A DNA stretch of 64,000 nucleotides from Tubulanus polymorphus (Eukaryota > Animalia > Nemertea). A model generated the notes under the pieces. That model was not told the DNA's origin. It saw nothing but the letters and a program-made list of their open reading frames with translations, and made no database searches. Shown here piece by piece: positions 13,317-37,612 of this stretch. The stretch lies in the NCBI RefSeq assembly GCF_964204645.1, contig NC_134035.1, positions 7,658,451-7,722,450 of the forward strand, written 5' to 3'. The position numbers were made by a program, and so were the translations under genes. Positions within the stretch are counted from its first letter, which is position 1. Each line of letters opens with the position of its first letter.

Positions 13317-13530
13317 TATATATTTATTGACGTAATCGCGTTTGTAAACCTGAGAATATCAGGGATGATGAAAATAAAGAAATAAGCCGTTATCATCGGG
13401 CACACTTAACATCGGGGACTTCAATTCGGTCGGCGATGTTAAAAGGATCAGAAAGTGTATGTTTGTTGGTAACTCATGAGAACGCGTTGACAATAATTCG
13501 TAATTACGCTACAGACATTATTTCGATCGA

Positions 13531-13616
13531 CTAAAATTGAATGTTTGACCGGCCACCAGGTGGATGAACGATCTTAGTGGCACTTCTTCGTGGAGACTTT
13601 TCATCAAACTGCGCAC
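13531..13616 (-). CDS. DPYS: Alternative distal terminal coding exon of the DHP/CRMP gene
   Basis: ttttacag|GT GCG CAG TTT GAT GAA AAG TCT CCA CGA AGA ... TAG = (G)AQFDEKSPRRSATKIVHPPGGRSNIQF*. Same 86-nt length and phase as exon 16915-17000. Confidence 0.85.
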
Positions 13617-14478
13617 CTGTAAAAACCAAGCAAACTATCATTGTATTCAATAAGGCAAATAATAGCAGATGTAAATTTACATGTACAAACGATTCACTAA
13701 TTCTTTGGTTCTCAGCCTCGCTTCATAGACTAGGTGCTAGATACCCAGAAGGCCACTTTCATATGATTGGGATTGAAATGAGAATGTTGTTGATCTTAGT
13801 AGACCCACGCATAAAGGGGCTGGTCTAATGGTATCGACCTAAACCCTGGGTTTCACTCTAAAATTAGCCATCCGAATAAACCCCCTGGTTTAGTTAATAC
13901 TGGTCTACCGGAGTTAACTCACAACTGAGGGACTTGATCACTTACACACTAGCATCAAGTATACCTATCAAGTAAACCAGTGTCAAGCGTCACCGAGCGT
14001 ATTTGTCGTTTGCAACGTTTTCACTGATATCTCAACTAAGATGGTTGATATTTTTGTCGCAATATCTCATGTGCAGGGTACATTGACAATGCATTTACTT
14101 TCAATAATGCACACGTTTCAGGTACATATTACTTGGTTGATTGATCATACAACCTACGATAGCGGCAGCTGTTGCTTGAATGCCAGAAACAGTTTTCGGT
14201 GTGATTGTCGTTGTTAAATTGCTGCGGCGTACTCGTCGCTAGTGTGCGGCAGGCGTAAGGACTAGAATATCTTTCGCTTATAAACACCGATTCCAATTAT
14301 ATCCAAGAAACCTATCATTGGGTTTTTTACTTTAACTTCTTGATAAAACTTAAAAGACCTGCATACAATTCACATTTCAATGAAAGCATTATATTTTCAC
14401 CATTCAATAAAGTTCTCAATCATTCATTATACCCACGGTATGGGGATTGAATCATTTATCGTTCAATCAAAAAAAAAA

Positions 14479-16421
14479 ATTTACTGGTCCAGGGACACCA
14501 TGCCCACGTGGGAAGTGGTTTTAAATGCTCAACAATCTAATTTCAATACTCAATACCCAATCCAATGACCTTGAAACTCAACCACAATCATAGAACATGT
14601 CAGCAGCTACAATTTTGTAATTGATTGTGGTAACAAAATATGCCTAGTTACCAATATAATATGGAAATAGTAAGTTATTCTACTATTCAACGCCCCCTGG
14701 TGACCATATGCAAAGCCCAATGACCTTGAAACTTATCTCAATCATAGAACATGTCATGAGCTACAACTTTGCAATTGATCATGGTAACAAAATATGCCTA
14801 GGTACGAATATAATAAGGAAATACTAAGTTACTCTACTATTCAACGCCCCCTGTAGACCATATAGAATAACTTATGACCTTGAAACTCACCACAATTATA
14901 GACCATGTCATGAGCTACAACTTTCAAATTGATTGTGGTAACAATCAATATATTTGTATCCCTTGGGGGATACAAATATATACGAACTATCAAGATAATT
15001 GATCAAAGCGTCTTCAAAATTTCCCTCGAAAACTTCAATAAATTGCCCATGGGCAAAGTGTGGTTTACCTTGAAAGCTAGAGGTTGTTTGGGGTAAGGGC
15101 ATTGCTTGAAAAATCTTTTTAATTCGTGACTTCAAAGTTCTACAAGTTTAATCTTGTAGAACTTTCTTAAAGGATTATTTTGTAGTCAAAAGACCAAAGA
15201 TATACATTTGTTTACGGTCCCCACCAAAAATTTCATAGGGTACAGGTAGGCGCGGCATGGAAACTATTTTATATTTTCAAAGAAATAATTTTCATAATAT
15301 GAAAAAATATTCAAATGAAATTCATATGATGTCACATATCAGAGGGTGGCTGCATGTATGGCCGCGGAAGCTAAAATACCGGTGCAGTAAGAAATCGGCG
15401 TATTAGATCGTTTTAAATCCTGGAATTCACCACTTCAATATTCAGACCTCCACCTATACCTATAGTTTGCTGCTTAGTATTTTCAGATCACAAGAAATAA
15501 CAATTTATTACAAATTCTATCAAACAGAAAACACAGCGCTCATCTTCTGCTGATTAAATGTCAAATGCGCCAGCAAGCAGCGTTACAGTATCACTATAGT
15601 AGTGTATACTGTACGCGCGTGTGTTTGTGTGCGCAACAGTCTAATCTTCTTATGATTTCCGCGCACACGTGGAGGCCTTGTGTAAGTGAATGTTCGCTAC
15701 ACTTCAATGTCAATCAAATCAATCACCGGGTATTAAAATGAAACAATACCTATGGCGAATAATAATTACATTATCACCAGCAATGAGCATTTGAAATTCG
15801 CACATATACGGCACCTAGTCCAATGAAACGTAAGCCATTCCATGGCTTTCCCATAATTATTTTAGTAGCGCCGGAATTCCCCGTAAATCCCAAAAACAGC
15901 CAATCACATTTTCTCGTAGAGACAACGCCTTCCAATCGAGGTCATTGCAATTTTATACGTAAGAGCTAAGAATTTTCCCGCCAAAAACAGTTTTTCGTAA
16001 AATTTTAACTCAGTTGACCATGTCATCGACGGAGGTTCGCCATGTCTTCAATCGCATCGATTATACGTCGTTTAAGCAGAGAACCAATGAAACAAATGCT
16101 CACATAAAAAAACGTACCGCGATTTTACATGAATTGGCTCAATGCCAACATCATATCGCTGACAAAGGTAAACCAAAAATGTGTAAAAAGTGCTGATTTT
16201 GGCAAACCAAAATGGCTGCCAGTCAGCCATCTTGAATCTGACCAGGCCAGTTTTTGGGCTGAAGATGTGCCTAGGGTAGATACATGTATAAACCAAATAT
16301 CAAGACATTAGCTTGAAGCGTCTTCAAAACTTCCCAAAATAACTGGATTCCGTCTACGGACGGACGGACGACAAGTGAACGCAATAGCTCGCTGGGACTT
16401 AAGTCCCAAGTGGGCTAAAAA
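14479..16421 (-). mobile_element. Non-autonomous Helentron/HINE-like element, copy A, with internal ~155-bp tandem repeats and a ~1.1-kb nested insertion
   Basis: Homologous to 51205-53167. On the minus strand it begins TTTTAGCCCAC with a hairpin and (GTCC)n microsatellite; AATGACCTTGAAAC units near 14565, 14719 and 14874. Confidence 0.7.
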
Positions 16422-16914
16422 GTGACCACTGGTAGTAAAGAAATGAATAAACAACTAACAACAACAAACATTCATACAGTGAATAATATGTGGAAAAGGG
16501 TACGACTAGCACAATTATATTCTAAATATCGCAGTGTTACGTCGGTTTCATCTAAACACAGACTTCATGCAAATATAGAATTTTTCTATGCATGTTTTGA
16601 TTCGGTGAAACGGGGTCAGTTGAGACCGAGCTCGTTAAATGACTTAAAACCTTATGGTTTAAATCTATCAGTCATAAAAGTTTTGATTATGGACTGGGCA
16701 TCATTGATTTTTCATTCATTTACAATATTTGTAAAATCTATTCGCACATTTTACAACGAATAAACTATAATCTTGGATGTAGCCCGATATAAACTGCATT
16801 TGTCAATTAATCTTTAGCGATCAATGAAAAACGTGCGTCATCATTTTTTGTTGAGAGCACTTAACTAACCAGAAAAATGTCGACGACGATGATGAACGTA
16901 TTATGTTTCATAAT

Positions 16915-34932
<18,018 letters not shown>

Positions 34933-36087
34933 GACCGCGAAAAAGACGATAAACGAATCACGGATTGTCAGCAGTCGAATGAAGAGCACGTATCAACAGC
35001 AGTGTTAGTTATTAAAATGTTTCTTTCGATTAAAACCAGCAGTCATACGTGAGAAAACAGTTACCGGTTATAAATACAGTCAGCATCAACTTCACATCTA
35101 CTTCAACAATCCAACGCCCGTCTCCGGTGGCGACAGCAGCGAACCGCATTCAACAAGTCCGTCTCCGGAGCCGCGTTGCATAATAATCCGTCTGTTGTCA
35201 ATAGCAACGGCCGGAGTCTGCGGCATATTCCGAGAGAGTGAAGTATCCGACAACATCGACGCACACACGTGTGGGCGCGGAAAACTTTGCAACAAACGAA
35301 GAGAAGTCAAAAACGTGAAGATCCCGCCGCAACAGATGGAAATCTTTTACCGATCTTATGCGCAAAGCGTCGAATAATTTTCGACAGCTTTTGCAGAATC
35401 CTGCGAGCGCTGATGTCGACAGTGATCCAGTATTTCACCGGCAGACGAAAGCATGAGTCAAACGACGGCGATGAATAATAATTCAGAGTACAGGTCCTGT
35501 AACCGATGACTCAGATCTCACTGGATCGAGGGGTTGCTGCCGAACAGCAACATCAACTTGTTACATGACTAATGATGCTGAAACAACTCGCCCAAAAAAC
35601 CACTTCATCCAGATACCATAACCTGCTCAGGCAGGGTTAATACACCTGAATCCGGCATTCAAACATTTTGTCAGATGAAACTCAACTTGAAACTGAAATA
35701 GACACCAATTGTTTCGCATAGGTCCTATAGAACAAGCCGTATAACCACCGGCCGGGTTGACTAGTTCTATTGGTTTAGTGGTTAGCACGCTAGTTTTCTG
35801 CCTACAAGACCGGGTTCCCGGCACATTACTTCACTGTCACTGCGTTAGACCAGGGTGGTGCAGGTGATTCCTGCTTACTTACGATTCAAACCACAAAACA
35901 AAGCAGAAAGAATGTACAAAATCAGCCTAGATATCACGTCCAATAAAAACGTCAACTCTTCAAGAAACCTTAATAAAACGATCATTCCAAGATCCATTAT
36001 CATGATTTACAAATTACGTCATCCTCTAAATCCATCAATCTTAATGACATTCATACCCTTGAAAAACTACAATGAGCAAAAATAGTA

Positions 36088-36400
36088 ATTAACCAGACTG
36101 TGTTGGTTAAGTCAGTAACCATACTGTTGGTTAAGTCAGTAACCAGACTGCATTGGTTAAGTCAGTAACCAGACTGTGTTGGTTAAGTCAGTCATCAGAT
36201 TGTGTTGGTTAAGTCAGTCATCAGATTGTGTTGGTTAAGTCAGTAACCAGACTGTGTTGGTTAAGTCATTAACCAGACTGTGTTGGTTAAGTCTGTGACC
36301 ATACTGTTGGTTAAGTGAGTAACCAGACTGCATTGGTTTAGTCAGTAACCAGAGTCCTGTGTAGGTTAGTAAGTAACCAGACTGCTGTAGTTAAATCAGT
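36088..36400. repeat. 26-bp minisatellite (AACCAGACTGTGTTGGTTAAGTCAGT), about 11-12 copies
   Basis: Period 26 visible; related to the Academ-like terminus TAGTCAGTAACC. Confidence 0.9.
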
Positions 36401-36425
36401 TACTGAAATGCGGTCATTAAAACTG

Positions 36426-36551
36426 GGGCCAGTTGCTTAAAAGTTGGTTAGAGTTAACCAGTGGATAGCTGACATAGTGACAATTAAATTTTATTGTTAC
36501 TTTGGTATCTATCCACTGGTTATCTTTAACCAACTTCTGAGCAACTGGCCC
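36426..36551. mobile_element. Harbinger-type MITE, CTG TSD, almost wholly palindromic
   Basis: CTG|GGGCCAGTTGCTTAAAAGTTGGTTA ... TAACCAACTTCTGAGCAACTGGCCC|CTG. Confidence 0.85.
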
Positions 36552-37265
36552 CTGGACTGTAATTTAGTCTGAATCTATTCACCCACTCCAGAGAATGGCT
36601 GGTTCATAGCAGTCTGTGTCATGCGTTAAGCGTTCGCATGAACCATGTCTGTTTGTTAAATCACGTTGAAATTCAAGAATGGACCTTTCAGTACACAGGA
36701 ATTAGCATATACCGGTATACAAATAAAATCCCTACTACAATGACCTCATTTTATTATCTTTTCTTCATATTTTATGCTTTCTTGAAAACCGGTATACAGG
36801 CCTACTTAAACGTGGCTATAAATTGATTAAGAAAATTTTGGTACAAATTTTTAGTTTCACTAAAAACTCATAAATATAGATAAATCATAGCAACACAAAA
36901 GTAGATCGATGTCGCGTTGCACGTTTTCAAGGAGGCCAACAATTCTAATTTGACCGTTTTAAGCTAAAACAATCTTGTGAAACTGGACCCAGATTGCTAT
37001 AGGCCGTAATCATAGTTAAGTATTTAAAAACATTTGAAAGAGAGAAGAATATGATGATATAATTTGTCGAAGTGAATCTAAATTCACTGCGTATTTGCCT
37101 TCGGTGTTTACTCTTAGCATCAGGGACCGTGCTCGGAAAAACAGTCACGCAAATTTGAATGCTGTGTCTTCGCGGTTGGGTGCACTAAGATCATAGAGCG
37201 ACCTCACTGTTGTGCAGTGGTAGAAACAACCACTGCTGCCCCAGGACTGGGTGAATCTCCATTCC

Positions 37266-37491
37266 AGTTAGTTTGTTGGTGGAAGCTTTTATTAACGGAT
37301 GGGCTTATACCAACTGTGGTTTGTGAAAATATCCAATCGTGAAACTAAACCACAGACAGGTTACGGACTAAATTATGATGAATCTCCGTCAGAGGACGGC
37401 TCAGACTGTCTGGTGGTTTAGTTTCGCGATCGAATATTTTCACAAACCCATCCGATTAAAAGCTTACCACCAATGATTAGGTAACTAACTA
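37266..37491. mobile_element. Two short Academ-like MITEs in tail-to-tail orientation
   Basis: About 37266-37370 (+) ending CAGGTTACGGACTA, and about 37406-37491 (-) ending AGGTAACTAACTA. Confidence 0.75.
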
Positions 37492-37588
37492 AGACTGTCT
37501 CGTCTCTGCTGACTCTCTCTGTCTGCCCTGACTACTGTGATGAGTGAGTGAGGTGGACTGGAATTTTTTAAATGCAACCCATACTTAC

Positions 37589-37612
37589 AGCATCATCTCC
37601 ACCGGCTGACAT
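37589..37612 (-). CDS. DPYS: Candidate most-distal first coding exon of DHP/CRMP (MSAGGDDA)
   Basis: AAA-ATG TCA GCC GGT GGA GAT GAT GCT|GTAAGTAT: good start context, consensus donor, phase 0, head-to-head with SAXO3. Confidence 0.55.

Follow-up and report, generated by a model that had tools for sequence, protein, structure and literature searches.

A stretch of 64,000 nucleotides from the nemertean Tubulanus polymorphus (contig NC_134035.1, positions 7,658,451 to 7,722,450; here called the window, with positions counted from its first letter) carries a split gene of the dihydropyrimidinase/CRMP family on its minus strand. We consider it likely that its product is a dihydropyrimidinase, a cyclic amidohydrolase (EC 3.5.2.2) of pyrimidine catabolism, whose active site is intact; that the gene has CRMP-type alternative first exons and a duplicated tail; and that a catalytically dead CRMP is encoded by a separate gene on contig C5. 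CRMPs are a textbook case of enzymes that have turned into structural or signaling proteins. What is unusual in the window is that an enzyme gene retains CRMP-type ends and, alone in this genome, has the long first exon. A first-pass annotation, made from the letters of the window, had proposed that enzyme and CRMP features are combined in one gene with up to four first exons and two last exons. Its coordinates, reading frames, and motifs proved to be correct, and its account of the isoforms and of the division of functions is revised below.

The gene model was reconstructed by combining splice sites with a translation in three frames, and it departs from a naive reading in small points, such as the donor GTAAGT after 19804. 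Ten shared exons span positions 25407 to 18201 on the minus strand, with AG acceptors and GT donors throughout, and the frame stays open from them into each of the two terminal exons (17000-16915 and 13616-13531). The first shared exon, exon 2 (25313-25407), starts in phase 0 and is immediately preceded by an in-frame TAG, so a coding first exon is required. Its start residue is the same in the C5 paralog, where exon 2 reads SAQTRLLIKGG. Exons 4 (23355-23519), 7 (20527-20683), and 10 (18698-18784) were placed by splice sites and open frame. Exon 9 (19106-19369) matches CRMP1/2 with an E value of 1e-39 and DPYS with one of 6e-38, and exon 11 (18201-18411), which covers the linker region, ends in the donor G/GTATGT (the slash marks the exon end) and leaves phase 1. 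Database, structure, and family searches were made exon by exon, and the joined model was used in local scripts (frame and local tblastn against fetched loci). The ESM Atlas gave no usable match, and an exon 9 search of the protein collection found no relatives above 75% identity.

The first-pass annotation had described the metal-ligand motifs as intact, and this was borne out by an exon-wise search of solved structures, in which all six ligand positions (HxH, the carbamylated Lys, two His, and Asp) are present and align with dihydropyrimidinases. Exon 3 (24365-24549; structure-sequence search E values of 1e-22 to 1e-23) holds the HxH ligands in GGIDTHTH. Exon 5 (22729-22871), whose top matches are dihydropyrimidinases, holds the carbamylated Lys (VNSFK) and a His ligand (VHAEN), exon 6 (21437-21626) the second His ligand (YVVHVMS), and exon 8 (19804-19945; donor GTAAGT at 19803) the Asp ligand (TGTDHC). 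The motifs DTHTH, VHAEN, YVVHVMS, and TGTDHC share columns with the human, pufferfish, and Dictyostelium dihydropyrimidinases, and these columns are the established metal ligands of the dihydropyrimidinase family. The ranking of the matches points the same way for most of these exons. Exon 5 best matches structures 2ftw, 4gz7, 4h00, and 2vr2, above every CRMP; the top matches of exon 6 are 4gz7, 4h00, and 2vr2, and that of exon 8 is human DPYS (2vr2). Exons 5, 6, and 8 favor true dihydropyrimidinases over the best CRMP by 4 to 15 bits, while for exon 3 the match to CRMP3 is about as good as those to dihydropyrimidinases 4h00, 4gz7, and 2vr2.

No second copy of any catalytic exon was found in the window, and a mutually exclusive exon of the Drosophila kind is therefore not present here. 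The Drosophila CRMP gene uses mutually exclusive internal exons, which replace His192, named as zinc binding, with Gly between isoforms (PMC7954323). That gene serves enzyme and CRMP-type roles from one locus, as the window gene may also do. The two differ in that the window gene varies at both ends, has no duplicate catalytic exon, and is accompanied by a separate dead paralog.

To count family members, we searched the 268-Mb assembly with exons 3, 6, and 9. Each finds the window gene and one gene on C5, which makes exactly two members; a third, weak match is a distant amidohydrolase. The C5 gene (about C5:7058422-7066791, minus strand, loci L006-L010) has DANTH in place of DTHTH, V in place of the carbamylated K, IVAEN in place of VHAEN, IGV in place of VHV, and SGHS in place of TDHC, a loss of five of the six metal ligands. 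Ligand loss, a hallmark of CRMPs, is thus seen in the C5 paralog and not in the window gene, which keeps all its ligands. Exon 9 of the C5 gene is slightly closer to CRMP1/2 than to DPYS. Because the C5 gene is dead and has both its own short first exon and a PPGG tail (a single tail exon, PPGGKSSL), enzyme and CRMP are split between paralogs in this animal, just as in vertebrates and nematodes. In the C5 gene, an extra intron interrupts the counterpart of exon 3 and another that of exon 6.

Four first exons had been proposed for the window gene. All four run from an ATG to a GT donor in phase 0, but only 34932-34549 and 30451-30413 are supported by conservation; 37612-37589 and 25731-25729 are not. 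The longer of the supported pair, the A-type exon (34549-34932, minus strand; phase-0 donor ACG/GTAATT), encodes 128 amino acids (aa). A phmmer search with it against 1.8 billion proteins returned three weak matches, two of which are short open reading frames (ORFs) of eukaryotic metagenome contigs, and a word-based search with the exon alone returned no match. A profile of three sequences then yielded 22 homologous single-exon ORFs on eukaryotic metagenome contigs (P0002, P0003, and P0124-P0143). All 22 begin with Met and share the block LG.GSPRP.PRV....MFGHV.DAFD.KS, and no precomputed Pfam domain is recorded for this family. When a hidden Markov model was built from the 22 ORFs with the window sequence excluded, it matched one of 2,100 ORF pieces in the window, namely 34932-34549, from its ATG onward (E = 4e-11).

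The genomic setting of these homologues links them to CRMPs. In three loci (L019, L022, and L023), a long-exon homologue is found on the same strand as exons 2 to 4 or 5 of a CRMP-family gene, which lie 2.8 or 0.86 kb downstream of it; the HxH motif of these downstream genes is degenerate. At L022 the junction is built as in the window: the long exon is followed by GTAAGT in phase 0, and the acceptor of the exon after it is in phase 0 too. Long-exon loci L001, L002/L015, L017, L018, and L021 show no CRMP exons in the 3 to 14 kb available downstream and are uninformative. In the whole T. polymorphus genome, the window copy is the single long exon, and none was detected for the C5 paralog. Judged by these sequence comparisons, 34932-34549 is a real, conserved long first exon of the CRMP family, and the exon family could help to annotate long isoforms of the CRMP type in non-vertebrate genomes.

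The short, B-type first exon (30413-30451, minus strand; 13 aa) is supported chiefly by the paralog. Its donor, CAG/GTATGT, scores 8/9 and is among the top 2 of the 326 candidates described below. The exon ends in KKVPLHVQ followed by GTATGT, and the first exon of the C5 paralog ends in KKVPIHLQ followed by GTAAGT; the local score of 38 between the two peptides was reached by none of 1,000 query shuffles. In the paralog, 3.3 kb separate this first exon from exon 2, and the donor of the first exon is the sole one among 295 candidates to score 9/9. Human CRMP2 likewise starts with a 13-residue stretch of the MS..KK type, followed by SDRLLIKGG. Taken alone, the likeness of the 13-aa exon to the CRMP2 N terminus is not significant (rank 4 to 5 of 93), and a scan of the other loci for the motif KKVP.H.Q found nothing. 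Given the end that it shares with the paralog, we take 30451-30413 to be a real short first exon.

The two remaining proposals fare differently. Within 14.6 kb upstream of exon 2, we counted 326 candidates in which an ATG is followed by an in-frame GT, so the phase-0 pattern by itself is worthless; bare ATGGT occurs 14 times on this strand. The claimed 8-aa exon (37589-37612, minus strand; donor GTAAGT, 6/9) is one of the 326, and the claimed ATG-only exon (25729-25731, minus strand; donor 6/9) is one of the 14. Both are unsupported and no better than chance patterns, though not refuted. Nor can CpG islands mark promoters here, because the observed/expected CpG ratio is about 1 across the window. 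It is unlikely, in our estimate, that at least one further first exon (37612-37589, 25731-25729, or one that went unrecognized) is real and that the gene has three or more promoters. The GTAAGT donor at 37589 and the uniqueness of the 37612-37589 DNA in the genome speak for such an exon, as does the example of C. elegans unc-33, which makes three isoforms (L, M, and S) by alternative starts (PMC4807823). However, no conservation or coding signal was found for a further exon, short ATG...GT patterns are abundant, and there is nothing similar to the 8-aa exon near the C5 paralog. C. elegans resembles T. polymorphus in having a dead CRMP (unc-33) apart from active dhp enzymes and in its variable N terminus; the difference is that here the long N-terminal exon sits on the active enzyme gene, with none detected at the dead paralog. 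A tandem array of a 26-bp unit (36090-36400, 12 copies) lies between this 8-aa candidate and the long first exon, and the CpG observed/expected ratio has a trough of 0.12 there. A dispersed repeat with some 700 first-look candidates in the genome ends at 37450-37499, roughly 90 bases away from the 8-aa candidate.

At the other end of the gene, there are two terminal exons. The proximal exon, T1 (16915-17000, minus strand), has a good acceptor and matches residues 544-569 (of 572) of CRMP2, CRMP1, and CRMP4 with E values of 0.002 to 0.003. The distal exon, T2 (13531-13616, minus strand), whose tail ends in SPRRSATKIVHPPGGRSNIQF and then a stop, matches residues 544-568 of CRMP1 (E = 2e-4) and CRMP2 (E = 1e-3). 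Each begins in phase 1 after a good polypyrimidine tract, encodes 27 residues, and stops at the same codon, and both show the CRMP tail feature AQ.D..(P)(K/R)R....PPGG(R/K). Neither matches the human DPYS chain 2vr2, even at E values up to 10. This is a difference from vertebrate DPYS, which is the best structural match of the catalytic exons and has ligand motifs identical in kind. To our knowledge, DPYS also has no A/B first exons.

T1 and T2 differ at 32 of 81 coding bases, with 8, 4, and 20 differences at codon positions 1, 2, and 3, respectively. Only 3 codons are identical and 20 of the 27 third positions are changed, yet 17 of the 27 residues are the same. Such identity is not expected from 32 randomly placed changes (P = 5e-6), which upholds the earlier statement that the two exons are homologous. 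Their flanks share no similarity. The pattern indicates that the exons arose by tandem duplication long ago and that purifying selection has preserved both. Since each exon carries a stop, the two could be used as alternatives only. The tails differ in the region of the CRMP kinase sites, with APKRT in T1 and SPRRS in T2 (candidate phosphorylation sites), and this difference may be of functional importance.

It is still less probable than a further first exon that the gene uses one tail exon, the other being a relic of a partial duplication or part of a different transcript. RNA reads over 13380-19379 cover neither tail junction, about 2.2 kb of high-copy repeats separate T1 from T2, and the C5 paralog has one tail exon, all of which would fit such an arrangement. 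A relic, however, would not be expected to keep an open frame, a stop in the same place, a good acceptor, and its residues at this level of identity in the face of so many third-position changes, and neither the interval between T1 and T2 nor their surroundings showed any further coding exon. The very high-copy repeats lie at 14380-16580, 16980-17380, and 17780-17980, with contig depths of 1e4 to 6e5 in DNA runs; they occupy most of the interval between T2 and T1 and part of the intron before T1.

The original proposal holds that a single bifunctional gene stands in for the paralog split, a third way of accommodating enzyme and CRMP functions, and that up to eight isoforms arise from four first and two last exons. 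We regard it as very improbable. The intact core does bear CRMP-type ends, and each of the four ATG exons could in mechanical terms be joined to the acceptor at 25407. However, the dead C5 CRMP with its own ends contradicts a single gene, and two of the four first exons cannot be told from the chance candidates. Given this dedicated dead paralog, the gene does not represent a new way of dividing the two functions.

We instead favor an active dihydropyrimidinase with switchable CRMP-type ends. In this model, two alternative promoters and first exons would feed the phase-0 acceptor at 25407. The upstream start would add the 128-aa A-type extension, which is probably disordered and contains the conserved motif SPR...MF..VPDA, and the downstream start would add the 13-aa B-type N terminus. 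Two mutually exclusive terminal exons would then each provide a 27-aa CRMP-type PPGGRS tail. As the shared part and a tail together make 574 residues, the predicted proteins have 587 residues if they start from the 13-aa exon and 702 if they start from the 128-aa one; with either tail, up to four proteins (2 × 2) would be built around one active core. Four isoforms are the maximum that the exon sequences support, and we infer that the first and last exons are used alternatively. By analogy with CRMPs, the ends may regulate localization or cytoskeletal binding.

The closest parallel to this arrangement is found in vertebrate CRMP1-4 (DPYSL), where a long upstream and a short downstream first exon join the same second exon. 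The likeness extends to the tail (AQ.D...PPGGRS.I, residues 544-569) and to the N terminus, where MS..KK... precedes S..RL.IKGG. In the vertebrate CRMPs, however, the metal ligands and the activity have been lost, whereas the window gene keeps all ligands. We know of no alternative last exon for CRMPs. The CRMP2A isoform is 101 residues longer than CRMP2B (bioRxiv 10.1101/2025.01.13.632804; PMC4640224), and the Cdk5 site Ser27 is located in the A exon of vertebrate CRMP2 (bioRxiv 10.1101/2025.01.13.632804).

The presence of a full active site beside CRMP-type N-terminal exons and a CRMP-type tail suggests that these modules are independent of the loss of catalysis, and the gene offers a natural system in which to study how such modules work when the enzyme is active. 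A more far-reaching scenario, which we put forward tentatively and hold to be possible rather than probable, is that the CRMP-type ends (a long, phosphorylatable N-terminal exon, a short N-terminal exon, and the PPGG tail) arose on an active dihydropyrimidinase before any loss of the active site; here, the active enzyme alone would have kept the long exon, and its tail would have been doubled into two switchable versions. If this were true, a metabolic enzyme would be targeted or regulated like a cytoskeletal CRMP, and vertebrate DPYS would have lost its CRMP-type ends secondarily.

Several points weigh against an active enzyme with alternative CRMP-type ends. The dihydropyrimidinase activity of the window gene is predicted from its residues alone. 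None of the phmmer matches of the 128-aa exon among the 1.8 billion proteins resembled a full-length CRMP. Homology of this exon to the vertebrate CRMP-A exon, suggested by the motif K.GGMF..VE.AY..K of the latter and by the position of Ser27 in it, is no more than a lead. An amphioxus locus (L011) and a TARA eukaryote locus (L012) showed no tail exon within reach. Finally, the sequencing runs available for the window comprise four of DNA type (from one 2024 study) and one doubtful RNA run (2015), and over 13380-19379 the RNA run touches only repeat and no exon, the contigs there being otherwise of DNA type.

In one of these runs (X1), a contig over 17281-19379 differs from the window at 14 positions over 2.1 kb, among them 18331 (exon 11) and 19259 (exon 9), and probably represents the other haplotype. 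A short interspersed element is present in two copies of opposite orientation, one in an intron of the gene (23701-23946, plus strand) and the other just downstream of the long first exon (34310-34498, minus strand). No tRNA was called in either copy by ARAGORN, and the ORFs of the two copies share NPGF.GSNP.GDRVSW. A further tandem array, with a unit of about 93 bp (27398-28090; 7.3 copies, 75% match), lies in the intron that leads from the short first exon to exon 2 and yields several spurious ORFs.

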